Part shown: positions 26,926-51,185 of the stretch, piece by piece
Layout: the number at the start of each line of letters is the position of its first letter
Numbering within the stretch: the first letter of the stretch is position 1
Assembly: GCA_965112735.1 (NCBI GenBank)
Contig: OZ218958.1
Span: 2,604,001 to 2,668,000 of the forward strand
Source of the DNA: Phaeosaccion multiseriatum
Taxonomy: Eukaryota; Protista; Ochrophyta, other classes
Length of the DNA stretch: 64,000 nucleotides
Direction: 5' to 3'
Notes under the pieces: model-generated
Seen by the model: only the letters and a program-made list of their open reading frames with translations
Databases searched by the model: none
What the model was told of the DNA's origin: nothing
Program-made: the position numbers and the translations under genes

Positions 26926-29900
26926 ATGGGAAATGAGAGCAGTGGACTGAGTGGCACGGCCCATGCCGTGGACGACACAGTGGGGCCCACGCTGATGAGC
27001 GTGGCGGGCTTTGGCGAACGTTCGAATGCCGAGGGTGCCGCTGCTGGAAGTGGCGCTGAGGGAGCTTCAAGAAGCACAGCAGCTGGGAGCCAGAGCGACG
27101 CTGAGAAGAAGAAGGCGGCCGAGCGCGATCAGTCCGCTACCACTACTTCCAAAGCGGATGACGGCGGCGTGGACGATGTGATTGGCAACCTCGGAGGTAC
27201 CATCGCCGAGGGCGCGAGCAAGGTGGAGGAGCTCATCACCGGTGCGTCTTTTCTTGGGTGTTTCTGCGGCCCATGCCTGTGTGCAGTTAGAGTAGATGCT
27301 ATTATTTTGCTGTACATGTCCTTGCCTAGTTGCGGAGCTTTGTGATCTCCATCCCCTCTCCTACTTTCTTTGCGCTAAGATCCATCGGTGCAAAGATTCG
27401 CTTTCCCCCCTGTATTCAAAGATGAAGGGTTTCGTGGTGGCGGCAGCAGCAGCATGGCGCCGCCGCCGCAGAGGGGTGTCGGTGGCATTCGGTAGCAGTA
27501 GCAGTAGTGTGCGGTAGCAGGGGCGGGAAACAGCGAGGGAGCAGCGGAGGGCGAACAGTTTGGATACGTGGATATGGACCGGAAGGATGTAAGATACTCA
27601 TCCAGGCTTTACTCCGCCTCTATCCCCCCCTTCCCATCTCCGCTTCCAATGACCCTCGCCCTTCTCCCGCCCTTTCCCTCCGCTCTCCCCCCCCCCTGCC
27701 CCGAAACAGACTTCTTCTTCACCTCGGACCGAGACAGCCAGAAGAGGAAGCAATCCACCGACTCGACCCGAGGCAGCGTCGAGCTCTCCAGCTCCGCGGC
27801 CTCGTCCCTCGACTCGCTGGGCGTGAGCATTGAGGATATCAAGGAGTACTTCGCTTGGTTCTTCGGCAGCGGCTCCGACGACGAGGCGGGAGGTGAGAGA
27901 GCGCTTCCGGGGGTGGTGGGGAGGAGGGGGAGGGGGAGGGGGAGGGGGAGGGGGAGGGGGAGGGGGAGTCATGGGAAGCCTTTCGGCTCAACGATGAGGG
28001 GTGTGGTGGGGCATTGAGAGTGGTGGTAATGAGGGGTGCGGAGGGTCATGTGTTGGTGTTGGTGATGATGTGGCAGGAGGCCTACGACACGAAACGGTTC
28101 GGAATAGTTATTTCGCCCCTCCTTTCCCCCACCACATTCGCTCACTCACTCACTCCTTCCCTCACTCACTCACTCACTCACTCACTCACTCACTCACTCA
28201 CCTGCTTGTACTCACGCGCGCGCCCTAACTCACTCATTACCTCCTCACTACCTCCCCTTACCCTACTGACGCACTCACTCACCACTCTACTCACTCACTC
28301 ACTCACTCATTCATTCACTCACTCACCTGATCTTACTCGCACTCACCCCCTCCTACCTCACTCATTCCGTCCTCACTACCTCCTGACCTTACTCAGTCCC
28401 TCACTCACTGACACCCTCGTTGACCTGACTCACCCACTCTCTCTCCCACTCACTTCCTATCTCCCTCACTCTCTCACTCTCTGACTCACTCACTCACTCA
28501 CTCACTCACTCACTCACTCACTCACTCACTCACTCACCTGCTGTCACTCACACTCACCCCTTACCCCGCTCATTCCTTCCACACCACCTCCCACTTGCTC
28601 GCTCACGCACTGACTCACTCGCTGACCTGACTCAGCCACTCACTCACCCACTCACTTGCTCTCCCTCCCTCACTTGCGCACTCACTCAACTCACTCAAGT
28701 CGCTCAACTCACCCCCCTACCCGCTCCCTCACCCTTCCCTGTTCCCTCCCTCCCTCCCTCCCTCCTTCTTATATCTCTCTCCACTCCCTTCACCACCATC
28801 TCTTCCCTCACCCTCAGGGTCCTTCCCGGGGTCCTTCTCGACTGGCAGCGGCTCCGGCAGCACCGGCACCGGCACGGGCACCAGCCCTGCCTCGAACGTC
28901 AAGATCGCCGCGCTTATGGACGTGGCGGGCTTCGACCCCAAGGCCAAGGCCTCGGACCCAAAGGCGGCTGAGCAGAACTTCCTCACCTTCCTCAACGGCT
29001 TGGACGACTCAACCCTCCAGGCGGGGGTGCAGAAGGTAGAGGCCAGCGTACCTTCTACCTCCGCTACCACCGACAAGGGCGCTCTTTCCGACGCTGCTGC
29101 CTCGTCCCTCGACTCGCTGGGCGTGAGCATTGAGGATATCAAGGAGTACTTCGCTTGGTTCTTCGGCAGCGGCTCCGACGACCAGGCGGGAGGTGAGAGA
29201 GAGCGCGTGTGTTGCGGGGGGGTGGGACAGGAGAGGGCAGGGGGAGGGGCAGGGGGAGGGGGAGGGGGAGGGGGAGGGGGAGGGGTAGGGGCGGAGAGAT
29301 GGGCGGTTGAAAGGGAGGGCTCAGACTGAACTCACTCTGTCAGTCACTCATTCACCCATTCAGTCCAATCACTCACCTGATTGTAAACTCAACGTTCGCT
29401 CATCCCTTCCTTACTAAACCTCTTGCCCTACAGACTTGCTCGCTCACTGACCCATTTATCACTGACTCATTCGTAGACTCACTGACTCATTCACTGCCTC
29501 ACTCACTTGCCGGCCTCATTTACATTCCCTCCCTCACTTACTACGAACGCACTCACCCACTCTCTTTCTCTCTCCCTTACTGACTCAACTCTCCCTCTCC
29601 CTCACTCAACTCGCCCACCCACGTTTGACCACCCTCGCTCACACACGTTTTCACACATCCCGTCGCCCTCTCCCATCTCCTGAATAACAGGTCCTTCGGC
29701 CTCCTTCACCGGTCCTTCGGCCTCCTTCACCGGTTCCTCGGGCTCCTTCACCGGTCCCTCGGGCTCCATCTCGACTGGCAGCGGCTCCGGCAGCACCGGC
29801 AGCGGCAGCGGCACCAGCCCTGCCTCGAACGTCAAGATCGCCGCTCTCATGGACGTGGCGGGCTTCGACCCCAAGGCCAAGGCCTCAGACCCAAAGGCGG

Positions 29901-32900
29901 CTGAGCTGAACTTCGTCAACTTCCTCAACGGCTTGGACGAATCCACCCTCCAGGCGGGTGTGCAGAAGGTCGAGGCCAGCGTGCCCTCGGCCTCCCTCTC
30001 GGGCACCCCCGCCAAAACGGGATCGGGCGACACGCCATTCCACACCCCCGCTGGGGACGACACCGACGGCGCCATGGCGGGTGTTGCAGGTGGGCTGGCA
30101 GCGGCCGGAGCAGCAGCCGGAGCGGCCATTGGAGGTGCGCGTGTGTATCAAAAGGTTTTGGGCCGCGTGTGTGCGTGTGTGTGTGTATGTGGGTCTAGGG
30201 TTTGCGGGAGGAGACTCTGAAAGATTGGCCCAAAGTGGACTCTCTCCACCTGGAGTCAGGCAGCTTGCTTAGGGCAAGATAGGAGGAGGAGGATTGTGGG
30301 TTGAAGGGGGGGGGGGGGACTTACATCAACGTGTAGTAAGGTCCACAACCTCTTCGAACATGGTATTGTTTGAGTGCTGTCTTGCTTTTGCGCGTCCGAA
30401 AGGCTCGTCTCGAATCCTTCTCTGGGAGGAAATCCTGTTGGGTGAGCACCATTACTTCCCTCTTTTCCTTTGTGCCTCCTGCTCCCTACCCCTCTCCCCC
30501 CTCTTCTTGTTGTCAGCCCATTAACCTCTTTTTTCTCCTCTTGTGCTCTCTTGCAACTTTGGGACTGCTCGTCCGTTGCTCTGCTACCTTCCCTCATCTT
30601 CGCTTCGCTCCTCGTCACACAGTGAACAGCAGTGCGGAGAAGGACAAGGACGGCAAGAAGAAGAACGACAAATTCCTCTGGGGTGAGTGTCGTGTCTGAC
30701 TTGTCTTACGCGTGTGTGGTGTGATTGTGTTTGACCTCTTGCAGATTTGGACTGTGTGTGAGTCTGTACTACTCTTGTGAAACTGTACAGACTGGCCGCG
30801 CTGCCGGTACCGTATCTTACACTCCCTTCCAACGCGACTCCTGCGTGGTTTGAATGCCAAAGAGTGTGTGGAAAGGTTCGCTCATATCCCTCATCGGCAC
30901 TGCCATGCTTTTTTGTTACTTTACTCACTCACTCCTCAGGCATATTCGGAGGAGGAGACGACAACTCTACCCCCGCAACTGGCGACGCTACCACCGCCGC
31001 CACTGGAGGAGGAGCTGGAGAAGGAGGAATGGGCGCCTCTCTCTCCGGCGCGGCTGACGACCTGTCAGCAAAGGCCGAGGATGCATCTGATGCGATCGGT
31101 GCCAAGATTGACGAGACACAGGGCATGTTCTCCGATAGCACTGGCACTGGAGCAGCAGGCACTGAGGCAGGAACCGGAGCAGGAACCGGAGAAGGAGGAA
31201 TGGGCGCCTCTCTCTCTAGTGCTGCTGACGACCTCTCAGCCAAGGCCGAAGAAGCATCTGATGCGATCGGTGCCAAGATTGACGAGACACAGGGCATGTT
31301 CTCCGATAGCACTGGCACTGGAGCAGCAGACACGGGAGCAGGAGTGGGTGGATCCCTCTCTGGCACGGCTGAAGACCCCTCAGTCAGCGCCGGAGGGGCT
31401 TCTTCCGGCCTCGGTGGCCCGGACGCAGGAGGAGCTGGCGAGACCGGTGCCGGTGATGACGGTCTTGGAGACAAGGCCATGGCGGGTGTTGCGGGTGGAC
31501 TGGCAGCAGCAGGCACGGCACTTGGAGGTGTGTATCAATGGTCTCTTGAGCCCCCCCCCCCCCTGTTCACAGTGGCGCCTTTGTGGGGAGAGTGTGAGAG
31601 TGGTCATGGTGTCAAACTTGATGATTGGGGAGTGAAAAAGGCGGATACAATGCGTGCGAGTACCCGTCAACTGCCGCTCTTGTTGGCACGACCCTCTCTT
31701 TCCGTCCCGTCTACTCTCCTGCACCGTTCTGGGACTCATTGTCTACCCTGCCTATATGCCTCTATGCCTCTGTTCACCCCCCTCCCCCTATCCTCTGTAT
31801 GCATCTACCTCCCCATCTCCCCCACCCTTCTGCACCTTTTGCCTCCTTATTTCACCGCAGTGAGCGAGGCCAAGTCCAAGAAGAAGAAGAAGAAGGGCAT
31901 GTTCAAGGGTGAGTACAGCCACTTTTGTCGGCTCGCAAACTGCTGCTGTAGTCCTGTTCACTCAACTCATGGGTGTATATATGGGGTTGCGGTGCGCCAG
32001 CTTGAGACACCCCATTTTGGGGAATTGGGGGGGGGGGGGGCGGTTACATGATCGAGTAGTTCGGTTGCCTGAAAGAGCGATACGAGTGTTACGTGCATCA
32101 GGGTCATAGAGTGGTGTCGTTTGTCTTCCTCTCATGCCCCTTTCTTAACTCTGTTGCGTGCTGTTTTATCACCCCCTATCACCCTCTTTCCTTTGTGCCT
32201 TCTCAGGCATTTTCGGCTCGAGCAAGAAGGACCTGAACGCAGATGCCTCTGTGGACACCCCTGCTGCCTCTGTTGATGCGAGTGGCAGCGTGCCGGAGAT
32301 TGGCAGCGCTTCGCTTCCCTCGGGTGGTGTGAGCGCTGATGGCTCGCTTCCCTCTGGTGGCCTGAGCGTGGACGGCTCTCTTCCCTCGGGAGAGCTCCCC
32401 TCGGGTAGCCTGGACGTGAACGCCCCCAAGCTGGACGGCAGCATGCCTAGCGTGGACGGCTCGCTTCCCTCGGGTGGCGTTAACGCGGATGGCTCTCTTC
32501 CCTCGGGAGAGCTGCCCTCGGGTAGCGTGGACGTGAATGCGCCCAAGCTGGACGGCAGCATGCCTAGCGTTGACGGCTCTCTTCCCTCGGGTGGTGTGAG
32601 CGCTGATGGACTCTCTCTTCCCTCCGGAGAGCTCCCCTCGGGTAGCGTGGACGTGAATGCCACCAGCATCTCTGCGGACGGCAGCATGCCAGACGGATCA
32701 CTTTCCTCTGGTGGCCTGAACGTGGACGGCTCTCTTCCCTCTGGAGAGCTCCCCTCGGGTAGCGTGGATGTGAATGCCCCCAAGCTGGACGGCAGCATGC
32801 CTACCGTGGACGGCTCGCTTCCCTCGGGTGGCGTTAACGCGGATGGCTCTCTTCCCTCGGGAGAGCTCCCCTCTGCCAGCTTGGATGGCAAGGACCCCAA

Positions 32901-35900
32901 GGCCTCTGGCGACATGTCGGGAGCTATGGCGGGTGTGGCGGGAGGGCTCGCGGCAGCTGGAGTCGCAGTCGGAGGTGAGAACGAAGAAGACGGATGAGTT
33001 GGATGGTGGTGGATGGGGAGGGGAGGGGTTGAGGATGGCAGTGGATGAGGGGAGGGCATGGCAGAGGTGAGGTCAGACGGGAGGAGAGGACAGGACAGGA
33101 CAGGGGGAGGACTCACGGAGAGAAAAAAAGTGGGGGAGAGAAGAGAAGAGGAGAGAAGAATAAAAATGATTGTCTAATGCTTGTCTTGTTCTCCTCAACT
33201 GTGCAGCGAGCGGCACGGACGGCGGCAAGAAGGCCAAGAAGAAGGGCAAGAAGATGTTCAAGGGTGAGTGAGTATGCGCGCCGTGTCTCATATTGCCTTA
33301 CTCTCTGAAGAGCTGCAATGCAAGAGCTGCAAACGTGGCCTGATCTCGTCCTTGTTCTCACGTCACATTGCCTTCTCTGCACCCTTTCTGCACTCTTTAG
33401 GCATGTTCGGCTCCAGCACGAAGAAGCTGAAGGTTCCTGACGCCGATGCCTCTGTGGACGCGCCTGACGCCTCTGTGGACGTCAACGCGCCTTCGCTTTC
33501 CGGCGTGGGCGTGGATGGCTCTCTTCCTTCCGGAGAGCTCCCCGCTGCCAGCCTGGACGTGAATGCGCCCAAGCTGGACGGCAGCATGCCTAGCGTGGAC
33601 GGCTCGCTTCCCTCGGGTGGTCTGAACGTGGATGGCTCCCTTCCCTCTGGAGAGCTCCCCTCGGGTAGCCTGGATGTGAATGCCCCCAAGCTGGACGGCA
33701 GCATGCCTAGCGTGGACGGCTCGCTTCCCTCGGGTGGTCTGAACGTGGACGGCTCCCTTCCCTCGGGAGAGCTCCCCTCGGGTAGCCTGGATGTGAATGC
33801 CCCCAAGCTGGACGGCAGCATGCCTAGCGTGGACGGCTCGCTTCCCTCTGGTGGCGTGAACGTGGATGGCTCTCTCCCCTCGGGAGAGCTCCCCTCTGCC
33901 AGCCTGGACGTGAATGCCCCCAAGCTGGACGGCAGCATGCCTAGCGTGGACGGCTCGCTTCCCTCTGGTGGTCTGAACGTGGATGGCTCTCTTCCCTCTG
34001 GAGAGCTCCCCTCGGGTAGCCTGGATGTGAATGCCCCCAAGCTGGACGGCAGCATGCCTAGCGTGGACGGCTCGCTTCCCTCGGGTGGCCTGAACGTGGA
34101 TGGCTCTCTGCCCTCGGGAGAGCTCCCCTCGGGTAGTGTGGATGTGAATGCCCCTAAGCTGGACGGCAGCATGCCTAGTGTGGACGGCTCGCTTCCCTCG
34201 GGTGGCCTGAACGTGGATGGCTCTCTTCCCTCGGGAGAGCTCCCGTCGGGTAGCTTGGATGTGAATGCCCCCAAGCTGGACGGCAGCATGCCTAGTGTGG
34301 ACGGCTCGCTTCCCTCTGGTGGCCTGAACGTGGATGGCTCTCTTCCCTCTGGAGAGCTCCCCTCGGGTAGCCTGGACGTGAATGCCCCCAAGCTGGACGG
34401 CAGCATGCCTAGCGTGGACGGCTCGCTTCCCTCGGGTGGTCTGAACGTGGATGGCTCTCTTCCCTCGGGAGAGCTCCCCTCGGGTAGTGTGGACGTGAAT
34501 GCCCCCAAGCTCTCTGTGGACGGCAGCATGCCTAGCGTGGACGGCTCGCTTCCCTCTGGTGGCGTGAACGTGGATGGCTCTCTTCCCTCTGGAGAGCTCC
34601 CCTCGGGTAGCCTGGACGTGAATGCGCCCAAGCTGGACGGCAGCATGCCTAGCGTGGACGGCTCGCTTCCCTCTGGTGACGTGAACGTGGATGGCTCGCT
34701 TCCCTCGGGAGAGCTGCCCTCTGCCAGCCTGGACGTGAATGCGCCCAAGCTGGACGGCAGCATGCCTAGCGTGGACGGATCTCTTCCCTCTGGTAGCGTG
34801 AACGTCGATGGCTCTCTTCCCTCTGCCAGCTTGGATGGCAAGGACCCCAAGGCCTCTGGCGACATGTCGGGAGCTGTGGCGGGTGTGGCGGGAGGGCTGG
34901 CTGCAGCTGGAGTCGCGGTCGGAGGTGAGGCAAATGTCCCTCTGATCGTTTCCCTCTTTCCGGAGTGCCCTGATTTTTGCCATTCTGACTGTGTATTGCC
35001 TTTCTGCATCTCCTTAATTGTGCAGCGAGCGGCACGGACGCTGGCAAGAAGGCCAAGAAGAAGGGCAAGGGCATGTTCAAGGGTGAGTGGGTGCGCACTG
35101 TCTCATATTGCCTTACTCTCTGAAGGGCTGCAATGCAAGAGCTGCACACCTGCCCTGATGTATGTATTGCTTGGTCTCACTTCGCAGTGCCTTCTTTGCA
35201 CCGTTTCTGCACTCCTTAGGCATGTTCGGCTCAAGCACGAAGAAGCTGAAGGTTCCTGAGGCCGATGCCTCTGTGGACGCGCCTGACGCCTCTGTGGACG
35301 CCAACGCGCCTTCGCTTTCCGGCGTGGGCGTGGATGGCTCTCTTCCCTCGGGAGAGCTCCCCTCTGCCAGCCTGGACGTGAACGCCCCCAAGCTGGACGG
35401 CAGCATGCCTAGCGTGGACGGCTCTCTTCCCTCGGGTGGCTTGAACGTGGATGGCTCCCTCCCCTCGGGAGAGCTCCCCTCGGGTAGCCTGGACGTGAAT
35501 GCGCCCAAGCTGGACGGCAGCATGCCTAGCGTGGACGGCTCGCTTCCCTCGGGTGGCGTGAACGTGGATGGCTCCCTCCCCTCTGGAGAGCTCCCCTCGG
35601 GTAGCCTGGATGTGAATGCCCCCAAGCTGGACGGCAGCATGCCTAGCGTGGACGGCTCGCTTCCCTCGGGTGGCGTGAACGTGGATGGCTCCCTTCCCTC
35701 TGGAGAGCTCCCCTCTGCCAGCCTGGACGTGAACGCCCCCAAGCTGGACGGCAGCATGCCTAGCGTGGACGGCTCTCTTCCCTCGGGTGGCTTGAACGTG
35801 GATGGCTCCCTCCCCTCGGGAGAGCTCCCCTCGGGTAGCCTGGACGTGAATGCGCCCAAGCTGGACGGCAGCATGCCTAGCGTGGACGGCTCGCTTCCCT

Positions 35901-38900
35901 CGGGTGGTCTGAACGTGGATGGCTCGCTTCCCTCTGGAGAGATCCCCTCGGGTAGCCTGGACGTGAATGCGCCCAAGCTGGACGGCAGCTTGCCTGATGT
36001 TGACGGCTCGCTTCCCTCTGGTGGCCTGAACGTGGATGGCTCGCTTCCCTCTGGAGAGCTGCCCTCGGGTAGCCTGGACGTGGATGCCCCCAAGCTCTCT
36101 GTGGACGGCAGCATGCCTAGCGTGGACGGCTCGCTTCCCTCTGGTGGCCTGAACATGGATGGCTCTCTTCCCTCTGGAGACCTCCCCTCGGGTAGCCTGG
36201 ACGTGAATGCGCCCAAGCTGGACGGCAGCATGCCGAACGTTGACGGCTCGCTTCCCTCGGGTGACGTGAACGTGGATGGCTCGCTTCCCTCGGGAGAGCT
36301 GCCCTCTGCCAGCCTGGACGTGAATGCGCCCAAGCTGGACGGCAGCATGCCTAGCGTGGACGGATCTCTTCCCTCTGGTAGCGTGAACGTGGATGGCTCT
36401 CTTCCCTCTGCCAGCTTGGATGGCAAGGACCCCAAGGCCTCTGGCGACATGTCGGGAGCTGTGGCGGGTGTGGCGGGAGGGCTGGCTGCAGCTGGAGTGG
36501 CGGTCGGAGGTGAGGCAAATGTCCCTCTGATCGTTTCCCTCTTTCCGGAGTGCCTTGATTTTTGCCATTCTGACTGTGTATTGCCTTTCTGCATGTCCTT
36601 AATTGTGCAGCGAGCGGCACGGACGCCGGCAAGAAGGCCAAGAAGAAGGGCAAGGGCATGTTCAAGGGTGAGTGGGTGCGCACTGTCTCATGTTGCCTTA
36701 CTCTCTGAAGGGCTGCAATGCAAGAGCTGCACACCTGCCCTGATGTATGTATTGCTTGGTCTCACTTCGCAGTGCCTTCTTTGCACCGTTTCTGCACTCC
36801 TTAGGCATGTTCGGCTCAAGCACGAAGAAGCTGAAGGTTCCTGAGGCCGATGCCTCTGTGGACGCGCCTGACGCCTCTGTGGACGTCAACGCGCCTTCGC
36901 TTTCCGGCGTGGGCGTGGATGGCTCTCTTCCCTCGGGAGAGCTCCCCTCTGCCAGCCTGGACGTGAATGCCCCCAAGCTGGACGGCAGCATGCCTAGCGT
37001 GGACGGATCGCTTCCCTCGGGAGAGCTGAACGTGGATGGCTCCCTTCCCTCTGGAGAGCTGCCCTCTGCCAGCCTGGATGTGAATGCGCCCAAGCTGGAC
37101 GGCAGCATGCCTAGCGTGGACGGCTCGCTTCCCTCGGGTGGCGTGAACGTGGATGGCTCGCTTCCTTCGGGAGAGCTCCCCTCGGGTAGCCTGGACGTGA
37201 ATGCCCCCAAGCTGGACGGCAGCATGCCTAGCGTGGACGGCTCGCTTGCCTCGGGTGGCTTGAACGTGGATGGCTCGCTGCCCTCGGGTGGCGTGAACGT
37301 GGATGGCTCTCTTCCCTCGGGAGAGCTCCCGTCGGGTAGCCTCGACGTGGATGCCCCCAAGCTCTCTGTGGACGGCAGCATGCCTAGCGTGGACGGCTCT
37401 CTTCCCTCGGGGGGCGTGAACGTCGATGGGTCTCTTCCCTCGGGAGAGCTCCCCTCTGCCAGCCTGGACGTGAATGCCCCCAAGCTGGACGGCAGCATGC
37501 CTAGCGTGGACGGATCGCTTCCCTCGGGTGGCGTGAACGTGGATGGCTCTCTTCCCTCTGGAGAGCTCCCCTCTGCCAGCCTGGACGTGAATGCGCCCAA
37601 GCTGGACGGCAGCATGCCTAGCGTGGACGGATCGCTTCCCTCTGGTGGTCTGAACGTGGATGGCTCGCTTCCCTCTGGAGAGCTCCCCTCGGGTAGCCTG
37701 GACGTGAATGCCCCAAAGCTGGACGGCAGCATGCCTAGCGTGGACGGCTCGCTTCCCTCGGGAGAGCTGAACGTGGATGGCTCCCTTCCCTCGGGAGAGC
37801 TCCCCTCGGGCAGCGTGGACGGGAAGGACCCCAAGGTCTCTGGCGACATGACGGCCGCTATGGCGGGTGTAGCGGGAGGGCTGACGGCAGCTGGAGTGGC
37901 GGTCGGAGGTGAGAGCGAAGGCCCTTGTCAACGTGGATGGGGATGGGAGAATGGCAGTGGATGGTGGCGGGAGGGGTCGAGAGGGGGGGACGAGGGAAGG
38001 GTAAAGAAGTGGAGATGAGGAGGGGAGAAGAGGAGGAAAGTTTGGCCGAGGGAGGGGAGGAGAAAAGGAGAGGGGGAGAGAAGAGGAGTCGAGAGGACAC
38101 GGCAGGACAAGAGAGTAGAGGTGAAGAGCTTTCCTTCTCGCCGTTCTGACTTTGTATGTGCTTTGTGCTTGTTTTTGTTCTCCTTAACTTTGCAGTGAGC
38201 GGCACGGACGGCGGCAAGAAGGCCAAGAAGAAGGGCAAGGGCATGTTCAAGGGTGAGTGGGTGCGCACTGTCTCTTATTGCCTTACTCTCTGAGGAGCTG
38301 CAATGCAAGAGCTGCACACCTACCCTGATGTATGTATTGCTTGTTCTCACGTCACATTGCCTTTTTGCACCCTTTCTGCACTCTTTAGGCATGTTCGGCT
38401 CCAGCACGAAGAAGCTGAAGGTTCCTGAGGCCGATGCCTCTGTGGACGCGCCTGACGCCTCTGTGGACGTCAACGCGCCTGACGCCTCTGTGGACGTCAA
38501 CGCGCCTTCGCTTTCCGGCGTGGGCGTGGATGGCTCTCTTCCCTCCGGAGAACTCCCCTCTGCCAGCCTGGACGTGAATGCCCCCAAGCTGGACGGCAGC
38601 ATGCCGGACGTTGACGGCTCGCTTCCCTCGGGTGGCCTGAATGTGGACGGCTCTCTTCCCTCGGGAGAGCTCCCCTCGGGTAGCCTGGACGTGAACACCC
38701 CCAAGCTGGAAGGCAGCATGCCTAGCGTGGACGGCTCGCTTCCCTCGGGTGGCGTGAATGTGGATGGGTCTCTTCCCTCTGGAGAGCTGCCCTCTGCCAG
38801 CCTGGACGTGAATGCCCCCAAGCTGGACGGCAGCATGCCTAGCGTGGACGGATCGCTTCCCTCGGGAGAGCTGAACGTGGACGGCTCCCTTCCCTCGGGA

Positions 38901-41900
38901 GAGCTCCCCTCGGGTAGCCTGGATGTGAATGCCCCCAAGCTGGACGTCAGCATGCCTAGTGTGGACGGCTCGCTTCCCTCGGGTGAGCTGAACGTGGATG
39001 GCTCTCTTCCCTCGGGAGAGCTGCCCTCCGGTAGCGTGGATGTGAATGCCCCCAAGCTGGACGCAGATGGGGACGGCGAGCTCTCCCTCGGACAGAAGGT
39101 GGCGGCGGGTGTGGCTGGACTGGGTGTCGCTGGAGCCGCAGCGCTCTCCTTCGGCGGAAAGGGCGACAAGCCTAGCGTGGACGTGGATGGCTCTCTCCCC
39201 TCGGGTAGCCTGGACGTGAATGCCCCCAAGCTGGACGGCAGCATGCCTGATGTTGACGGCTCGCTTCCCTCGGGTGGCGTGAACGTGGACGGCTCGCTTC
39301 CCTCTGGAGAGCTCCCCTCGGGTAGCCTGGACGTGAATGCCCCCAAGCTGGACGGCAGCATGCCTGATGTTGACGGCTCTCTTCCCTCTGGAGAGCTCCC
39401 CTCTGCCAGCCTGGATGTGAATGCCCCCAAGCTGGACGGCAGCATGCCTAGCGTGGACGGCTCGCTTCCCTCGGGTGGTGTGAACGTGGACGGCTCGCTT
39501 CCCTCGGGGGAGCTGCCCTCGGGTAGCCTGGACGTGAATGCCCCCAAGGTGGACGGCAGCATGCCGAACGTTGACGGCTCGCTTCCCTCGGGTGGCGTGG
39601 ACGTGGACGGCTCTCTTCCCTCGGCAGAGCTCCCCTCGGGTAGTGTGGATGGGAAGGACCCCAAGCTCTCTGGCGACATGAAGGCCGCTATGGCGGGTGT
39701 AGCGGGAGGGCTGACGGCAGCTGGAGTGGCGGTCGGAGGTGAGAGCGAAGGTCCTTGTCAACGTTAGGCATTGTAATGACGTGCCTTCCTTTATCGCTCC
39801 ATTACCCTTTCTTCTAACTTCTGTGCGTTGCTTGCTTCTTCTGTTCTCTCCAGTGAGCGGCACAGACGGCGGCAAGAAGGGCAAGAAGAAGGGCAAGGGC
39901 ATGTTCAAGGGTGAGTGCGGGCGCCTTGTCTCAAGTTCTCACACTTCTCTATTGAAGAGGTGTAATGCGAGAGCTGCTTACCTTTGTGCGGATGTGGAAG
40001 TAATGTGCCTTTGGTCTCACGTCGGAGCGTTGCCTTATGGTGCCCCATTTCGTTTGCACCGTTTCTGCACTCCTCAGGCATGTTCGGCTCAAGCACGAAG
40101 AAGCTGAAGGTTCCTGAGGCGGATGCCTCTGTGGACGCCCCTGACGCCTCTGTGGACGTCAGCATGCCTGACGTTGATGGCTCACTTCCCTCGGCTGGTC
40201 TGAACGTGGATGGCTCGCTTCCCTCGGGAGAGCTCCCCTCGGGTAGCGTGGATGTCAATGCGCCCAAGCTGGACGGCAGCATGCCTGATGTTGACGGCTC
40301 GCTTCCCTCCGGTGGCGTGAACGTGGATGGCTCTCTTCCCTCTGGAGAGCTCCCCTCGGGTAGCCTGGACGTGAACGCCCCCAAGCTGGACGGCAGCATG
40401 CCTAGCGTGGACGGCTCGCTTCCCTCGGGTGGCTTGAATGTGGATGGCTCCATCCCCTCGGGTAGCCTGGACGTGAATGCGCCCAAGCTGGACGGCAGCA
40501 TGCCTAGCGTGGACGGCTCGCTTCCCTCGGGTGACGTGAACGTGGATGGCTCGCTTCCCTCTGGAGAGCTCCCCTCGGGTAGCCTGGATGTGAATGCCCC
40601 CAAGCTGGACGGCAGCATGCCTAGCGTGGACGGATCGCTTCCCTCGGGTGACGTGAACGTGGATGGCTCGCTTCCCTCTGGAGAGCTCCCCTCTGCCAGC
40701 CTGGATGTGAATGCGCCCAAGCTTGACGGCAGCATGCCTAGCGTGGACGGATCGCTTCCCTCGGGAGAGCTGAACGTGGATGGCTCTCTTCCCTCGGGAG
40801 AGCTCCCCTCGGGCAGCGTGGACGGGAAGGACCCCAAGCTCTCTGGCGACATGAAGGCCGCTATGGCGGGTGTAGCGGGAGGGCTGACGGCAGCTGGAGT
40901 GGCACTTGGAGGTGCGTACGAAGGTTCAGTCTGTCATTTACCTTTCCGGTTCGCCATTGGGCTTTTGACTGCGAACTGAGTGTCCTGAATGCACAGCGTT
41001 TGTAGGGAATCATGTGGGCGTAAAGCTGATGGCTTCCTTCTTTCCCTCCTGCGTTTCTGACCTCTTTCCTCTCTCTCTCCTCTCTTTCGTACTGTAGTGA
41101 GCGGCGACGCTGACGCGCCCTCTGTGGAAGTTCCCAAGAAGGAGAGCACGGGATTCTTCGGAGGTGAGGAGGGCAGAGGCATCGAAGTGGAGTTTTGTCT
41201 TGTGGATGCCAAGATGGCTGATGTATCACGCTCGATGTCGCGCATTTTCTCTCTCTGCTCGATGGATCTGCTTGGGTCGCTCGGATTCTTATCTCTTCTC
41301 GTTGATGCTCCTCTCGTCTGTGCTCCACTCCACAGGTCTGTTCGGAGGCAAGAAGGACACCAAGGTCCCGGATGCCTCTGTGGACGTGGACGCTCCCAAG
41401 CTCTCTGTGGACGGCAGCATGCCTGAGGTTGACGGCTCGCTCCCCTCAGGTACCCTCGACGTGGATGCCCCCAAGCTCTCTGTGGACGGCAGCATGCCTA
41501 GCGTGGATGGCTCGCTTCCCTCGGGTGGCGTGAACGTGGACGGCTCCCTTCCCTCTGGAGAGCTCCCCTCTGCCAGCCTGGATGTGAATGCGCCCAAGCT
41601 GGACGGCAGCATGCCTAGCGTGGACGGCTCGCTTCCCTCGGGTGGCCTGAACGTGGATGGCTCGCTTCCTTCGGGAGAGCTCCCCTCGGGCAGCGTGGAC
41701 GTGAATGCGCCCAAGCTGGACGGCAGCATGCCTGATGTTGACGGCTCGCTTCCCTCGGGTGGCCTGAACGTGGATGGCTCGCTTCCCTCTGGAGAGCTCC
41801 CCTCGGGTAGCCTGGACGTGAATGCCCCCAAGCTGGACGGCAGCATGCCTAGCGTGGACGGCTCGCTTCCCTCGGGAGAGCTGAACGTGGATGGCTCCCT

Positions 41901-44900
41901 TCCCTCGGGAGAGCTCCCCTCGGGCAGCGTGGACGGGAAGGACCCCAAGCTCTCTGGCGACATGAAGGCCGCTATGGCGGGTGTAGCAGGAGGGCTGACG
42001 GCAGCTGGAGTGGCACTTGGAGGTGCGTACGAAGGTTCAGTCTTTCATTTACCTTTCCGGTTCGCCATTGGGCTTTTGACTGCGAACTGGGTGTCCTGAA
42101 TGCACAGCGTTTGTAGGGAATCATGTGGGCGGAAGAGCTGAGCTTCCCTCTTTCCCTCCTGCGTTTCTGACCTCTTTCCTCTCTCTCTCCCCTCTTTCGC
42201 ACTGCAGTGAGCGGCGACGCTGACGCGCCCTCTGTGGAAGTTCCCAAGAAGGAGAGCACGGGATTCTTCGGAGGTGAGGAGGGCAGAGGCATCGAAGTGG
42301 AGTTTTGTCTTGCGTGCCAAGGTGGCTGATGTATCACGCTCGAACTTTCACAGCTCGCTGCGATCGCGCATTTTCTCTCCCTCTGCTTGATGGTCTGCTT
42401 GGGTCGCCCGGTTTCTTATCTCTTCTCGTTGATGCTCCTCTCGTCTGTGCTCCACTCCACAGGTCTGTTCGGAGGGAAGAAGGACACCAAGGTCCCGGAT
42501 GCCTCTGTGGACGTGGACGCTCCCAAGCTCTCTGTGGACGGCAGCATGCCTGAGGTTGACGGCTCGCTCCCCTCAGGTACCCTCGACGTGGATGCCCCCA
42601 AGCTCTCTGTGGACGGCAGCATGCCTAGCGTAGATGGCTCGCTTCCCTCTGGTGGGCTGAACGTGGACGGCTCTCTTCCCTCTGGAGAGCTCCCCTCGGG
42701 TAGCCTGGATGTGAATGCGCCCAAGCTGGACGGCAGCATGCCTGATGTTGACGGCTCGCTTCCCTCGGGCGGCCTGAATGTTGATGGACTCTCTCTTCCC
42801 TCGGGAGAGCTCCCCTCGGGTAGCCTGGACGTGAACGCCCCCAAGCTGGACGGCAGCATGCCTAGCGTGGACGGCTCGCTTCCCTCGGGTGGCCTGAACG
42901 TGGATGGCTCTCTTCCCTCTGGAGAGCTCCCCTCGGGTAGTGTGGATGTGAATGCCCCCAAGCTGGACGGCAGCATGCCTAGCGTGGACGGCTCGCTTCC
43001 CTCGGGCGGCCTGAACGTTGATGGACTCTCTATTCCCTCGGGAGAGCTCCCCTCGGGTAGCCTGGATGTGAATGCCCCCAAGCTGGACGGCAGCATGCCT
43101 GATGTTGACGGCTCGCTTCCCTCGGGTGGCCTGAACGTGGATGGCTCCCTTCCCTCGGGAGAGCTCCCCTCGGGTAGCGTGGACGTGAATGCGCCCAAGC
43201 TGGACGGCAGCATGCCTAGCGTGGACGGCTCGCTTCCCTCGGGTAGCCTTAACGTCGATGGCTCCCTTCCCTCGGGAGAGCTGCCCTCGGGTAGCGTGGA
43301 CGTGAATGCCCCCAAGCTGGACGCTGACGGGGACGGCAAGCTCTCGCTTGGACAGAAGGTGGCGGCGGGTGTGGCTGGACTGGGTGCCGCTGGAGCCGCA
43401 GCGCTCTCCTTCGGCGGAAAGGGCGACAAGCCTAGCGTGGACGTGGATGGCTCTCTCCCCTCGGGTAGCCTGGACGTGAATGCCCCCAAGCTGGACGGCA
43501 GCATGCCTGATGTTGACGGCTCTCTTCCCTCGGGCGGCGTGAACGTGGATGGCTCTCTTCCCTCTGGAGAGCTGCCCTCGGGTAGCCTGGACGTGAATGC
43601 CCCCAAGCTGGACGGCAGCATGCCTGATGTTGACGGCTCTCTTCCCTCGGGTGGCCTGAATGTGGACGGCTCTCTTCCCTCTGGGGAGCTGCCCTCGGGT
43701 AGCGTCGACGTGAATGCCCCCAAGCTGGACGGCAGCATGCCTGATGTTGACGGCTCGCTTCCCTCTGGTAGCCTGAACGTGGATGGCTCCCTTCCCTCGG
43801 GAGAGCTGCCCTCGGGTAGCCTGGACGTGAATGCCCCCAAGCTGGACGGCAGCATGCCTAGCGTGGACGGATCGCTTCCCTCTGGTGGCCTTAACGTGGA
43901 TGGCTCCCTTCCCTCGGGAGAGCTGCCCTCGGGTAGCGTGGACGTGAATGCCCCCAAGCTGGACGCTGACGGGGACGGCAAGCTCTCGCTTGGACAGAAG
44001 GTCGCGGCGGGTGTGGCTGGACTGGGTGCCGCTGGAGCCGCAGCGCTCTCCTTCGGCGGAAAGGGCGACAAGCCTAGCGTGGACGTGGATGGTTCTCTCC
44101 CCTCGGGTAGCTTGGACGTGAATGCCCCCAAGCTGGACGGCAGCATGCCTGATGTTGACGGCTCGCTTCCCTCGGGTGGCGTGAACGTGGACGGCTCTCT
44201 TCCCTCGGGAGAGCTCCCCTCGGGTAGCCTGGATGTGAATGCCCCCAAGCTGGACGGCAGCATGCCTGATGTTGACGGCTCGCTTCCCTCGGGTAGCCTG
44301 AACGTGGATGGCTCTCTTCCCTCGGGAGAGCTGCCCTCGGGTAGCCTGGACGTGAATGCCCCCAAGCTGGACGGCAGCATGCCCAGCGTGGACGGATCGC
44401 TTCCCTCTGGTAGCCTGAACGTGGATGGCTCCCTTCCCTCGGGAGAGCTGCCCTCGGGTAGCGTGGACGTGAATGCCCCCAAGCTGGATGCTGACGGGGA
44501 CGGCAAGCTCTCGCTTGGACAGAAGGTGGCGGCGGGTGTGGCTGGACTGGGTGCCGCTGGAGCCGCAGCGCTCTCCTTCGGCGGAAAGGGCGACAAGCCT
44601 AGCGTGGACGTGGATGGCTCTCTCCCCTCGGGTAGCCTGGACGTGAATGCCCCCAAGCTGGACGGCAGCATGCCTGATGTTGACGGCTCTCTTCCCTCGG
44701 GTGGCGTGAACGTGGATGGCTCCCTTCCCTCGGGAGAGCTGCCCTCGGGTAGCCTGGATGTGAATGCCCCCAAGCTGGACGGCAGCATGCCTAGCGTGGA
44801 CGGCTCGCTTCCCTCTGGTAGCCTGAACGTGGATGGCTCTCTTCCCTCGGGAGAGCTGCCCTCGGGTAGCGTGGACGTGAATGCCCCCAAGCTGGACGCT

Positions 44901-46292
44901 GACGGGGACGGCAAGCTCTCGCTTGGACAGAAGGTCGCGGCGGGTGTGGCTGGACTGGGTGCCGCTGGAGCCGCAGCGCTCTCCTTCGGCGGAAAGGGCG
45001 ACAAGCCTAGCGTGGACGTGGATGGCTCTCTCCCCTCGGGTAGCTTGGACGTGAATGCCCCCAAGCTGGACGGCAGCATGCCTGATGTTGACGGCTCTCT
45101 TCCCTCGGGTGGCGTGAACGTGGACGGCTCTCTTCCCTCGGGAGAGCTCCCCTCGGGTAGCCTGGACGTGAATGCCCCCAAGCTGGACGGCAGCATGCCT
45201 AGCGTGGACGGCTCGCTTCCCTCGGGTGGCCTGAATGTGGACGGCTCTCTTCCCTCGGGAGAGCTCCCCTCGGGTAGCCTGGATGTGAATGCCCCCAAGC
45301 TCTCCGCGGACGGCAGCATGCCTAGCGTGGACGGCTCGCTTCCCTCGGGTGACGTGAACGTGGATGGCTCCCTCCCCTCGGGAGAGCTCCCCTCGGGTAG
45401 CGTCGACGTGAACGGTCCCAAGGTCTCTGGAGACGCTGAAGGGCCCTCTTTGGGGCAGAAGATCGGTGCGGGTGTGGCTGGACTGGGTGCCGCCGGAGCC
45501 GCAGCGCTCTCCCTTGGCGGAAAGGGCGACAAGGATCACAGCTTGAGCGGGCCCAATGTAAGTGGGCCCAACGTGTCCACACCCGGCGGTAGCGTCAGCG
45601 GCTTTGGGCCCAACGTGAGCGCAAAGATCGATGCCATCACCAAAAAGTTCCATCCAGAGAAACAGACGCATACGGGCTTCGGTCCCGACGTCGGTATGGA
45701 GCACCCGGCATTCGGTGGGCAGCACTCAGCCCTAGACAAGCCTGGCTACAGTGGGTTCGGGTCTTCTTCGGGCTCCGTGCCTTCGGGCTCTGTTCCCTCG
45801 GGAAGCGTCAAGGCAAGCGTGAAGAAGCCTGCTGTCGGTGGGCACTCAGCCCTAGACACCCCCATGGGCACTCTCCCCTCGGGAAGCATCACTGGACCTA
45901 CCTTGACTCGGCCGGACGGAAGCATCGACACGCCCTCAGGGGATATCTCCGGACCCAGTGTCACCGGGCCGGAAGGCAGCATGGAGACGCCCTCAGTGGG
46001 TCTTCCCAATGTCACCGGCCCCGACGGACGTATCCAGAGTCCTTCCGTGTCTGTCAGCGGCCCCAATGTCGACGGGAAGTACACGGCTCCTTCCGGCTCT
46101 GTGAGTGGGCCCTCTGCAACAGTGTCTGACGTGAAGTATGGAGCAAGTGGCGGCAAGCTGTCTGCCTCTGGTGGTGGCGGTAACGTGGATCTCAAGCCGA
46201 CGACAGGCCATGTAGTCCTGGAGGGACAGCCTCAGCAGACGGCATGCTGCTCTACAGGTCGCTGCAGCTTCAGGGGTTGTGTGATCATGTAA
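26926..46292 (+). CDS. Giant AHNAK/periaxin-like repeat protein, ~4,605 aa, 22 exons; predicted N-myristoylated and C-terminally prenylated (CVIM)
   Basis: Exons 26926-27241, 27710-27892, 28818-29192, 29691-30134, 30623-30682, 30940-31527, 31861-31908, 32207-32974, 33207-33263, 33401-34924, 35026-35082, 35220-36509, 36611-36667, 36805-37908, 38196-38252, 38389-39738, 39854-39910, 40078-40911, 41098-41163, 41336-42022, 42208-42273, 42463-46292. All boundaries GT-AG, all internal exons multiples of 3, total 13,818 nt. Starts MGNESS, ends CCSTGRCSFRGCVIM*. Confidence 0.82.
28140..28730 (+). repeat. Degenerate (CTCA)n microsatellite in intron 2 of the giant gene (similar tract at 29330-29610 in intron 3)
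   Basis: ctcactcactca runs; reverse complement of the (GAGT)n array. Confidence 0.9.
32290..45420 (+). repeat. Coding 117-bp (39-aa) tandem repeat arrays, roughly 70 units spread over 8 exons
   Basis: Unit LDVNAPKLDGSMPSVDGSLPSGGLNVDGSLPSGELPSGS; the 117-bp period is visible e.g. between 33664 and 33781. Variation is mostly synonymous or conservative. Copy number is estimated from exon lengths. Confidence 0.95.
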
Positions 46293-47902
46293 GCAAGAGA
46301 CAAGAGAGAGAGAGATGGAGGGAGAGAGAGGAGGAGGAGAGAGAGAGGAAGAGACAGAGATGGAGATGGAGATAGAGAGAGCGTGCACAGTGCTGAGTGG
46401 ATGGGCTGGACTGGGTGTTTGGACTGACTTGATCAATTGAATTGATTGAGTCTGGTGTACTTTTGTGATGACTTTTGTAGTGGTAGTAGTAGTATGTAGT
46501 GGCAGTAGTGGTGGTGTAGGTTGTTTCGCCCCCTTCCCTTTTCTTTCTTTTTGATCTCTCGCTTTGGAGAGTTTGAGAAACGGGAAGGGCGAGCGTAACA
46601 ACCAGATTCAGTTTCAGGTTCAGTTGGGTGGGGGAAGCAAGGAGGGTTCCGAGCTGGCAGCTTTGGCTCTGGCTTTTTGGGTTTTTGTGTGAGGTGAATT
46701 GGTGTAATAGTACGGTTCGGCGTTAGTGTTCAAAGCGGATGGAGCTCAGCAGGAAAGGGAGGAGCCTTCGGGATGGAGGCTCTTGTCGATAGGTACGCAG
46801 TTACAGAAGCCCTTGGTTGAGGAGGTAAAGCCCACCTTCGAAGGCCATTGGTGCGAAGTGACAAGTGTGGACGTCGATGGGGGCGGGAGCAGTGTGGCGG
46901 TCGATCGAGGCAATGGTATACACGGGTGTGAGAGGGTAAAGCCCGCCTTCTCAAAACTCTTACAAAAGCTTCGGTGGTTGGTCGATCGACGGATTGCGAG
47001 GAATGAGGAGGAGGAAGAGAGAACAGGGAGAGAGAGAGAAGGAGAGAGAGTGTGTGTGAAAGGGGAGCTCATCAGATGGGGTGTGCTTTTATTTAATTTA
47101 ACGTCGCTTCGCCACGGTTGAGGAGGTAAAGCCCACCTTCAAAACCGTGCGCGGTGGTGGCGCAGCAACCATCTGTGAACTGACTTGTCGGAGGCAGTAC
47201 GTGTGTAGTTCTGGAGTCACATACAGTGCTTCGCGAGGGAGGGTACGCCCACTTTCCGTCACGAGAAGACTTGTGTGTGGCGGCAGTTAAACCGCACACG
47301 GGCACGCACACACCGGCAGGGCAGTGAAGAGAGAGAGAAGAGAGCTTTCCCCCATCGTCCTCCAGACGACGTGGATGGATCCTAAGTCCTCCATGGTAAC
47401 AATAATAGACAAGTGCTGAGTCAAAACCTCTGGACGGTGCTGCGAACGTATTACTTTTGTCCATCCAACTGGATCCCCCCAGGTGCTGCAAGCATTACTT
47501 TTGGTCTATCCAACTGGATGTAGGGCGTGTCGAGTATTGTTGTTACCCCTTACCCTCCTCGTTGTCGACTCGCCGTCGAGGTCTTCCATGTCCATACTTC
47601 CTTGTCAAGGCATCAGAATCACTCATCACCAAACGAATGCGGTGGAGCGACCCACGGACACCGCTGCAACCCAACAAACACACCAACCAACCAAGCAAGC
47701 AAGCAAGCAACCAACCACCACACACCCAACCAACCAACGAAGCTCTCAAGAGGCAGGCCGAGCGGTTGCGCACGCGTAGCTCTTGCCCACTCCTTCCTTC
47801 TCCTTCCTCCTACGTAACTACTACGAAGTACTTGTAATAAACAAAAAAACCAATCGTAAAGACACAAAACAAACCTGTGAGTGTGTACCACCAACTGCAC
47901 TA

Positions 47903-50900
47903 TTACATGATGACGCACTTGCAGCCCGTCTTCACGGCCTGCCCCGCTCCCTCCACCTGGTAAGAGCTCTGTGCCGGCCCCTCCGCCACCCTTCCCTGCA
48001 CCTCCTCTCCCGCCCGCCCCTGCTTGTCCCCGCTCCCCGCGGTACCACTCACAGGGGGAGGGGCCTTCATACCGGGGGAGCCTTGCAGCTCCGGCGATCT
48101 CGCCCCCGGAGAGACGAGGCCCGATGGAGATGACTCCTCTGCTGCCGCTGCCGCCGCTGCCGCCGCTGCTGCTGCTGTTGCTGCCGCCGCTGCTGCTGCT
48201 TCCGCCGCCGCTGCTGCTGCTTCCGCCGCCGCTGCTGCTGCTGCTTCTGCTTCAGCGTCAGCCTTGGCCTTTGCGTCTGCCGCGGCTTTGGCAACGGCGT
48301 CTTCTTCTTCCTTCCTCTTGGCCTCTGCCGCCGCCGCCGCTGCCTCAGCCTCTTCTGCTGCCTTCTTCGCAGCTGCCTCCGGATCCTCCCCTTGGGCCTT
48401 GGCGAGCGCCGCTGCGGGCATGGGAGGGAGAGCCAGGGGGGGAGGGGCGGCAGTCTCCTCTTCCTCCTCCGCTTCTGCCTCTACATCCTCTCCAGCAGCG
48501 GCCGCTTCTGCTGCCGCCGCCGCCGCCGCCTCGGCCTCCGCCTTCTTCTTTCGGGCAGCAAGCTTCTGTGCGAATTCAGTCGTGTGAATGCCCGGCAACG
48601 GCTTGAAGGTGGTCTGGACGTAGTTGTGAGGGAACCAGCCGCATGCACCGGATTTCTCTAGCTCACCCCACGACCATTGGTCCTCCTTGCGCAGCACTTT
48701 GATCTTGTCGCCGATCTGAAGGCGGTGTGCGGGAGGGGAGAGAGAGGGAGGGTAGGGGATAAGAGGCGGGTCAGCAGCGAAGAAGGGAGGAAGGAAGGGA
48801 GGAAGGGAGGGAGGCGGGGTGGGTGGGGGAGGAGACCAAACCGAACGGAATCATCCAGCCTTCACATGTGTGTCCATCACCTCCCTTCCCCTTGCCTGTA
48901 ACACACTCACACACACACACACACTCAAACACACACACGCACATACACACACACCCCCTCACACACACGCACACACGCACACACGCACCCCGAAACTGAG
49001 CTGCTCCAAGCTGGCGTCTCCCTTGAGAGGGTAAGAGGCCTCAATGGTGCTCCCCTCCTGAGCCTCGAGCGCGTAAGGGTCGTTGGCGTGCGCACGCTTG
49101 TCCGCCGCCTCTGCCTCTGCCTCGCTCGCCTCTTCGCCCGCCTTACCGCTGCTGCTGCCGTACTGCTTGGGGCGGAAGGGCGCCATCCCCCCTGCGTGGG
49201 CAAGGCGTGTGCGTGCGTGCGTGCGTGTGTGTGTGTGTGTGCGTGTGTGTGCGTGAGAGAGTGTGTGTGCGTGTGGGTGGGTGCGGAAGGAGCGGGTGAG
49301 CAAGTAACGGAGGCAACCAACCAATTCCCAATTCCCATCACTTTCACAAATGGCGTGGCGTGCAACCAACAGCTCCACCAGCACGGCCTAGAAAGCGAAG
49401 GAAAGGAAAGGATACAAGAGAGAAAGAAACGCCGCAGGCTCAAGACCAACAAACATGTGCTGAACAGCAGCAGCGGCAGTGTCTGTCCGTCCACCCTCCC
49501 ACGCTTGGGAAAAGATGCACGCTTTCTTGGTCACACTCACCTCCCATAATGGCTGTCATCCCCGTAGCCACAGCTCCTGCAGGTCGGTAGCTACTGGGCT
49601 TCTCTGGAGCAGCTCCATCACCGCCCGCCGCTCCTCCTCCTCCTGCCGCTGCTGCCGCGGCTGCTGTTGCTGCCTCCGCCTCTGCCTCGAGCTTTTCCTT
49701 CGCCGCTGCCACCCCTCCACTACTAGCAAAGACTCCGGATGCAGGAATGGGGGGAGGAGCTGCTGCTGCTGCTGGTGGTGGTGTTGCTGTGGTGGAGGTG
49801 GGAATAGGAGGGGGGCCTACCGAGGAAGAGGGGGGAGCTGCTGCTGCTGCTGTTGTTGCTGTAGAGCTGGGAATAGGAGGAGGAGACTGGGAGGCAGAAG
49901 GAGCCGTGACAGGGATGGGAGGAGGGGCTACGGCTGCTGTTGTTGTGGAGGAGGTCGGAATAGGGGGAGGAGACGCCGAGGAGACAGGAATGGGAGGAGG
50001 GTCAGAGGAAGAGGAAGAGCTGGGGATTGGAGGAGGACCCGTCTTGGGGGCCTCCGCCGATTCCGTCGATTCTGCCACCCCCTTCCCTGCTGCTGCTACT
50101 GCCGCTACTCCTTCAGCTGCTACTGCTGATGTTGCTGCTACTGCTCCTGCCCCTACCGCCCCCGCTGCTCCTGTCGCGGGTGCAGATTGCCCCTCCACAG
50201 CGTCTGTTCCTGCTGCTGCGATTGAGGCCGCTGCGTCAGAGGTGCCTCCGGCTGCTACTGAGAGCTTCTCCACGGCATCCGTTCCTGCTGCTGCGACTGC
50301 TGCTGTAGCACCAGAGCTGGCACCTGAGATGGCCCCTGCGATCTCTGCGGTGGCATCCGTGCTCACGCCTTCTATTGCTGCCTTCGCGTCCATGCTTGCT
50401 TCTTCTATTGCTGCCTTCGCGTCCGTGCTCGCTTCTGTGACTAATGCCTTTGCCTCGGTACTCGCTTCTGCTATCTCTGCCTTTGCGTCCGAGGTCGCTT
50501 CTGCGAGTGCTGCTGCTGGTGCTATCGGAGTCTCAACCTCTGGCAAGGCCGAGACGGACCCCACCCCTTCCTCAGAAGCACCTGAGGGCTCGGCTGAGGA
50601 TTGCCGAGGGGGCAAGGGCGGGGGTCCCCCCGCTGCGGCAGGGAAGGGCGCCTCTGCACTCTTCATACTGCCCGGCCTGCTCGTGGGCAAAGGAGGAGGA
50701 GTTGCCGCAGGTGCTTTGCCGGAGCCCTCCGCAGCGGCAGCAGGGAAGGGAGCTTCTGCACTCTTCATACTACCCGGTCTGCTGGTAGGCAGGGGAGGAG
50801 GAGCGACCGCAGGCGCCGGCGCCTCCACAGCGCCTTCAGCGGCGGCAGGGAAGGGCGCCTCTGCGGTCTTCATACTGCCCGGCCTGCTGGTGGGCAAGGG

Positions 50901-51185
50901 AGGAGGAGTGGGTGCCGTCGGCGCCTCCGCCGAGCCCTCAGCAGCAGCCTCATTTCCTACACTCTCACGAGGAGGAGTAGGAGGAGGACCCGCGCCTGGA
51001 GGTGCTGGAAGCTCCTGCTCTGCTAGAGAGGGAGGCTGGAGCGGCACAGGAGCGCCCCCAGCTTGGTCACCTCCTCCTCCTTCTGCTCCGGTTGCTGCTA
51101 CCGCTGCGGCAGTGGCGAGATCAGCGGCCTCGGCTTTCGGTACTTTGAAGCTCCCCTTACTGCTGCGCTTCTTCTTCCGTGCCAT
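47903..51185 (-). CDS. Proline-rich SH3-domain protein with polybasic N terminus and C-terminal CaaX (CKCVIM), ~886 aa, 3 exons
   Basis: Exons 51185-49541, 49191-48989, 48715-47903 (2661 nt). The SH3 domain is split by an intron: IEASYPLKGDASLEQLSFG|IGDKIKVLRKEDQWSWGELEKSGACGWFPHNYV. Many PPP[LI]P motifs; Ala/Glu/Lys coiled coil after the SH3. Confidence 0.85.

Follow-up and report, generated by a model that had tools for sequence, protein, structure and literature searches.

Identical CVIM ends on two convergent genes of Phaeosaccion multiseriatum: probable lipid anchors on an AHNAK-like giant and a proline-rich SH3 protein

Why should two neighbouring genes, transcribed towards each other, finish in one and the same prenylation signal? 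The question is raised by a stretch of 64,000 nucleotides from the stramenopile alga Phaeosaccion multiseriatum (hereafter the window; contig OZ218958.1, C9:2604001-2668000 in an assembly of 67.1 Mb and 22 contigs), which is eukaryotic in character, with GT-AG introns and a G+C content of ~55–65%. A giant gene on its + strand, with AHNAK-like repeats, and an SH3 gene on its − strand both end in the CaaX box C-V-I-M. An initial annotation of this DNA took the two products for a candidate scaffold-adaptor pair at a common membrane, or else for the descendants of a terminal exon that was duplicated in inverted orientation long ago. The reading that we favour, at a probability of roughly 0.55, is that two non-homologous genes independently acquired a Ras-type farnesyl-plus-palmitoyl anchor, and that they stand tail to tail by coincidence or are at most loosely co-regulated.

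The two convergent CVIM ends are confirmed by the sequence of both strands and by the translations. The giant gene closes with TGT GTG ATC ATG TAA (46278-46292, + strand) and the SH3 gene with TGC GTC ATC ATG TAA (47903-47917, − strand), the Cys and Val codons differing synonymously between the two boxes, as had been pointed out. The C-terminus of the giant protein reads ...CCSTGRCSFRGCVIM (stop codon 46290-46292), or, in other lengths of the same end, ...STGRCSFRGCVIM and ...QPQQTACCSTGRCSFRGCVIM, while that of the SH3 protein reads ...AVKTGCKCVIM, or ...GQAVKTGCKCVIM (stop codon 47903-47905); between the two stops lie 1,610 bp of non-coding DNA. The extra upstream Cys residues reported for both tails are likewise present, the giant having CC, C and C, the SH3 protein C-K-C. 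The cluster of the giant (46242..46292, + strand) spells A-C-C-S-T-G-R-C-S-F-R-G-C-V-I-M-stop, with the Cys codon of the CaaX box at 46278-46280, and the SH3 tail (within 47903..48715, − strand) spells ...K-T-G-C-K-C-V-I-M-stop, with the CaaX Cys at 47915-47917 and the upstream Cys at 47921-47923. In the giant's last exon (1,271 aa) the four Cys all fall inside the final 14 residues, and of the three Cys in the ~885 residues of the SH3 protein one lies within the SH3 fold and two make up the C-K-C of the tail. The region 45375-48132 is matched without a difference by Illumina-type unitigs from four DNA runs of one sample, except for three simple repeats that were skipped; as these runs are the probable source of the assembly, the match is not independent support.

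Both tails are probably genuine lipid anchors, farnesylated and palmitoylated. In each of the two genes a Cys stands fourth from the C-terminus and is followed by two aliphatic residues, a last residue out of M, S, Q, A or C, and the stop codon, and the genome encodes the machinery that processes CaaX proteins. This comprises prenyltransferases with alpha subunits (PF01239 repeats at three loci) and beta subunits (PF00432 at two loci, the best at 187 bits, their assignment to farnesyltransferase as against GGTase-I/RabGGTase not being resolved), Rce1-like proteases (PF02517 matches) and ICMT (PF04140, 73 bits). CVIM is the box of K-Ras4B, where it is farnesylated and alternatively geranylgeranylated (PMC12080315). 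The tetrapeptide is the same here, but neither protein is a GTPase, their lengths being ~885 and ~4,600 residues, and neither carries a polybasic stretch of the K-Ras4B type by its box. Polybasic segments had been claimed for both proteins; they do exist, as MARKKKRSSK at the N-terminus of the SH3 protein and as K-rich micro-segments in the giant, but none of them adjoins either CaaX box, and the second membrane signal would therefore be palmitoylation of the extra Cys residues. H-Ras ends in C-K-C-V-L-S and is palmitoylated on its upstream Cys, a spacing that the C-K-C-V-I-M of the SH3 protein resembles. For both proteins, comparison may be made with paralemmin, a hydrophilic cortical protein of the plasma membrane with little recognisable fold, which affects cell shape, has as its only conserved Cys residues a C-terminal cluster of the CaaX box and extra ones preceding it, and is both prenylated and palmitoylated (PMC2148134). 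The two proteins of the window are analogous to it in their presumed working, whereas the extra Cys residues of the giant lie 5, 11 and 12 residues upstream of the CaaX Cys and not directly beside it; as to homology, there was no paralemmin among the giant's library matches and no Pfam match. Since both tails look like genuine anchors, both proteins probably reach a membrane. To that extent the earlier proposal that they are directed to the same membrane has support, while a joint scaffold at that membrane is unsupported.

It might be objected that in one or both genes the CVIM box does not mark the true end of the protein, or is left unmodified, through a missed intron, an alternative last exon, early polyadenylation or an unfavourable context. 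Such a reading draws on the nature of the data, since both gene models were built from open frames and a GT-AG reading alone, and the only runs that contain the locus are DNA runs from one sample, with even depth across introns and intergenic region. Third-position GC, tried as a coding test, separated coding from non-coding sequence so poorly here that it was uninformative. Against it, both frames run unbroken from coding sequence into the boxes: that of the giant is open for 1,320 codons, from its 117-bp tandem repeats through a non-repeat tail to the stop, and that of the SH3 gene leads from a half-domain into its tail. The concentration of Cys at the very end of both proteins would also be hard to explain if these ends were not used, and we consider the objection unlikely to be right.

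The initial annotation had allowed that CVIM endings might simply be common in this organism. A search of the genome with the pattern TGY GTN ATH ATG plus a stop codon found seven CVIM-stop sites in 67.1 Mb, two further matches ending in TGG, so that the box is not common and an explanation by its abundance was discarded. Because a control with the reversed pattern gave four sites, several of the seven must be due to chance. Upstream of three of them the frame is open for just 6, 6 and 17 codons, and a fourth site stands at the end of a frame of 272 codons, composed of microsatellites for Asn and Arg/Lys/Glu, that looks non-coding. The other three are the window pair and a site on C4, so that three to four in all close a long open frame. 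The third credible gene (C4:1122883-1123797, − strand) encodes a plausible 304-aa Ser/Ala-rich low-complexity protein ending in ...AAGKDCVIM, and no CaaX neighbour was found beside it. The end of this protein reads KAATKAKAKAAV...CSSSSCAGVAGAKGSAAAGKDCVIM, and no Pfam family matched it above threshold.

If three, four or seven sites are placed at random, the probability of a pair within 1.6 kb is ~1e-4, 3e-4 or 1e-3, respectively, and a gene-neighbour model with 10,000–20,000 genes puts it at 1.5e-4 to 1.2e-3. When every CaaX box that neighbours might have in common is allowed for, 0.02–0.3 pairs are expected per genome, an estimate which takes 1–2% of proteins to be prenylated (PMC11152559) and 20–50 boxes to be effective; moreover, the scan behind the observation covers many genomes. 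The adjacency of the two CVIM boxes is thus notable within this genome and not compelling overall.

Common descent of the two tails is another way in which the pair could have come about, whether a terminal exon was duplicated in inverted orientation or a short patch was transferred between the convergent ends. The identical tetrapeptide, the Gly and Cys just upstream of it in both proteins and the inverted orientation of the genes all speak for such an origin, but the likeness goes no further than this. The resemblance described as an "EG..Q..T.C" lead-in shrinks to GQ...T.C on alignment, and it does not rise above chance: with CVIM left out, local alignments of the preceding 16–46 residues gave p 0.12–0.63 against shuffles (windows of 20–50 residues). 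At the DNA level, the last 200 nt, compared together with 300 nt of 3' untranslated region (UTR), gave p 0.09 against shuffles, with nothing alike but GA-rich simple sequence. The synonymous codons inside the box differ, and the two terminal exons have no exon-level homology to each other. The tail of the giant is single-copy, with no other occurrence in the genome, and the one paralogue of the SH3 module is without the CVIM tail. An inverted terminal-exon duplication was consequently rejected as unsupported, the alignments beyond CVIM being non-significant for protein and DNA alike. Judged from these comparisons, shared ancestry of the tails in any form is disfavoured and appears very remote.

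The giant gene spans about 26.9–46.3 kb of the window on the + strand, with its repeat exons in 30777-46292, and its product of ~4,600 residues is mostly of low complexity. Its last exon (42477..46292, + strand; the acceptor lies a few codons upstream of 42477, the exact site not being fixed) consists of 39-aa (117-bp) AHNAK-like repeats, followed from about 45300 by the non-repeat tail and the stop. In a library search with this exon, vertebrate proteins of the AHNAK, AHNAK2 and periaxin type came out best (at E 5.9e-72, with 28% identity across 97% of the query), and the only non-vertebrate named match was a partial protein of the brown alga Ectocarpus fasciculatus, the contig of which is 12.8 kb long and holds only a truncated giant-like gene and no neighbour. 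An exhaustive search with the 330-aa tail returned 93 matches of the same kind, whose best stretches reach no further than query residue 308. Of the 119 library relatives, none aligned with the last 22 residues of the giant, and none had a credible CaaX ending; two have a C at the fourth position from the end and no aliphatic pair, one of these being a likely truncated model. Two metagenome scans yielded no close relatives of either gene. Within the genome the 39-aa repeat family is restricted to the giant gene, except for a stray 70-aa copy and a weak match of 24–25% on C1. The stray copy (C4:2371646-2371855, + strand) is 91% identical and lies within an open frame of 90 codons, well away from the giant gene.

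The giant thus resembles AHNAK, AHNAK2 and periaxin in that its 39-aa repeats and part of its tail match AHNAK-type proteins best. AHNAK is a membrane-associated scaffold whose partners bind its C-terminal domain (PMC12992490). The vertebrate proteins begin with a PDZ-type N-terminus, whereas the likely first exon of the giant begins with MGNESS, and no PDZ domain was found in the pieces of the giant scanned against Pfam. The similarity of the repeats is strong, but E-values driven by repeats overstate kinship, and either homology or convergence may lie behind it; the giant is therefore not classed as a member of the AHNAK family. The likely first exon (26926-27345, + strand), whose link to the gene is putative, starts with MGNESSG, a sequence resembling an N-myristoylation signal (Gly2, Ser6). 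To judge by its two termini, the giant protein may be lipid-anchored at both ends.

The SH3 gene has three exons on the − strand and encodes ~885 residues, again mostly of low complexity. Exon 1 (49541..51185) carries the ATG and, at its polybasic N-terminus, MARKKKRSSKGSFK, then three PPPLPTSRPGSMK units, a region rich in Ala and Thr and six copies of a PPPIP unit, and ends in the phase 1 donor G/GTGAGT; it contains 20 PxxP motifs, two of them of class II (PPTPPR and PPLPPR), contains no Cys, and was matched by no Pfam family. Exon 2 (48989..49191; AG/GT flanks, phase 1 in and phase 0 out) encodes a linker followed by the SH3 domain's N-terminal half and ends in ...DPYALEAQEGSTIEASYPLKGDASLEQLSFG before the donor GTGCGT. 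Exon 3 (47903..48715) begins with IGDKIKVLRKEDQWSWGELEKSGACGWFPHNYVQ and continues through the C-terminal half of the SH3 domain, an FKPLPGIH extension and an Ala/Glu/Lys-rich low-complexity stretch into the CaaX tail. A word search for relatives of exons 1 and 3 found none among 8,000 scored candidates, which were saturated by low-complexity sequences.

The model, its domain split by an intron, was searched exon by exon. Residues 2–34 of exon 3 correspond to positions 21–53 of the 55 in SH3_2, with 21.8 bits, a score that equals the cut-off, and reach 16 bits against SH3_1. Exon 2 alone had no Pfam match; it aligns (E 2e-7) with the corresponding N-terminal half in a paralogue, up to ...QLSF, and in this paralogue the SH3 domain is contiguous across the site of the window gene's intron, its exon scoring 27.6 bits against SH3_1 (cut-off 22.9). 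The profile match of exon 3 and the alignment of exon 2 to a contiguous paralogous domain together support both the SH3 identity and the splice junction.

This paralogue of the SH3 module, the only one in the genome, is a multi-exon gene on the − strand of C15 (about 1431600-1438765, the module at about 1437200), with which the window gene has in common the stretch GWFPHNYVQ-FFKPLPG-H with a few residues after it (54% over 50 aa). After an intron, it continues with collinear RhoGEF pieces (profile positions 1–42, 103–139 and 138–179 of 180) and a PH piece; these are individually below the Pfam cut-off but correctly ordered, which indicates an SH3-DH-PH architecture. It also contains a long (CTC)n-rich intron. 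Compared with SH3-DH-PH RhoGEFs of the PIX-like kind, the window gene has the SH3 domain and the FKPLPG-H extension of the C15 paralogue, but in place of DH and PH it has an N-terminal half rich in proline, a C-terminal half rich in Ala and Glu and a CaaX tail; the intron positions inside the SH3 domain differ between the two genes as well. Since the paralogue has the SH3 module and not the CVIM tail, the CaaX tail lies outside what the paralogues share.

It may then be asked whether the two products work together. As a functional module, they would use the same anchor to reach the same membrane domain, the giant as a tether and the SH3 protein as an adaptor to Rho-GEF and actin, and their genes would be adjacent for the sake of co-regulation, perhaps through overlapping 3' UTRs. 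In favour of this, two of the three to four credible CVIM genes in 67 Mb are these neighbours (P 1e-4 to 1e-3), and both tails have putative second signals that are based on Cys and are not polybasic. There is also a loose precedent, in that vertebrate AHNAK, through its C-terminal domain, binds CaV-beta subunits, proteins of the SH3-GK kind, at a region of beta that is undetermined (PMC12992490). The statistics are weak, however, once corrected for look-elsewhere effects, and no CaaX gene stands next to the third CVIM gene. Nor does the giant offer a canonical ligand to its neighbour's SH3 domain. In the six open frames of 35162-46292 (~3,400 aa), repeats included, there is no PxxP motif, although about 10% of the residues are proline, and the three upstream frames, which include intronic stretches, hold four; non-PxxP ligands are possible. 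With 20 PxxP motifs in exon 1 of the SH3 protein itself, the giant is no likelier a binding partner than the protein's own motifs or a third party. A second instance of the pair, paralogous or orthologous, was not found: within the genome the repeat family is confined to this gene apart from the traces mentioned, and the RhoGEF-type paralogue on C15 has no AHNAK-like neighbour.

The intergenic region (46293..47902, 1,610 bp), which includes both 3' UTRs as well as GA-rich and CCAA-type simple repeats, bears on the same question, for it contains four stem-loops that might favour a common regulation. Three of them (46815-46842, 46926-46953 and 47116-47143, + strand) and a degenerate copy (~47237-47257) are built on the core GGAGG-TAAAGCCCA-CCTTC, which as RNA is GGAGG-UAAAGCCCA-CCUUC. 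Inner stem and loop are conserved, and the outer stems vary in sequence yet pair; the minimum free energies lie between −16 and −22 kcal/mol and the z-scores between −1.7 and −4.4. This 16-nt core has no other exact copy in the 67-Mb genome, and the stem-loops matched no family in Rfam. A regulatory element of the 3' UTR is one possible explanation of them, local tandem duplication another. In the same region, a 20-nt direct repeat, TTTKGTCYATCCAACTGGAT, is found at 47455-47474 and 47500-47519, 45 nt apart, and AATAAA occurs at ~47839 on the + strand and at ~47094 on the − strand; if both of these were used, the 3' UTRs would overlap by ~750 nt.

Taken together, the rarity of CVIM and the anchor-like character of both tails leave some room for the scaffold-adaptor module proposed in the initial annotation, while the lack of PxxP in the giant and of a second pair argues against it. 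The module is unsupported yet not refuted, and we regard it as a tentative possibility on the doubtful side; the placing of it in pseudopods is a guess. In its most elaborate form, a co-regulated cortical module would combine a ~4,600-aa tether, lipid-anchored at both ends (MGNESS... and CC..C..CVIM), with a farnesylated and palmitoylated SH3 adaptor to Rho-GEF and actin, the stem-loops coordinating the two transcripts. This version seems to us quite improbable.

The favoured reading, independent acquisition of the same type of anchor by two unrelated genes, would work as follows. A farnesyltransferase would prenylate the Cys of CVIM, the Met in the X position directing farnesylation as in K-Ras4B, whereupon an Rce1-like protease would cut off VIM and ICMT would methylate the new C-terminus. 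The nearby Cys residues, in the C-K-C of the SH3 protein and in the paralemmin-like CC...C cluster of the giant, would then be S-palmitoylated and so provide the second membrane signal. Both proteins would be held on the cytoplasmic side of a membrane, most probably the plasma membrane, where the AHNAK-like giant could act as a very long flexible cortical tether and the SH3 protein as a membrane-bound adaptor, its SH3 module being common to it and the paralogue of SH3-DH-PH RhoGEF type. The identity of the boxes would reflect convergence on a very good farnesyltransferase substrate. Several points weigh against this account. A chance adjacency of just ~1e-4 to 1e-3 for CVIM specifically makes coincidence uncomfortable, and all three credible CVIM proteins are of low complexity and not small GTPases, which hints at a common class. 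Further, SH3 domains can bind non-PxxP ligands, so that the absence of PxxP does not exclude binding between the two products, and both the gene ends and their modification are read from DNA alone.

Neither a full-text literature search nor the 119 library relatives yielded a natural CaaX-tailed AHNAK-like giant or a natural CaaX-tailed proline-rich SH3 adaptor. To our knowledge, the set of prenylated proteins of this lineage is essentially unstudied. The pairing itself is at present a statistical curiosity; if the module were real, nature would have in it an equivalent of the CaaX-tagged adaptors that cell biologists engineer. If both tails are used, a Ras-type signal anchors two unusual architectures, an AHNAK-like giant and a proline-rich SH3 adaptor, and the range of prenylated proteins would be widened beyond GTPases, lamins and chaperones. 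The two proteins would then also offer a handle on the cell cortex of a stramenopile alga, from which a farnesyltransferase inhibitor, or a change of Cys to Ser, should release them both.

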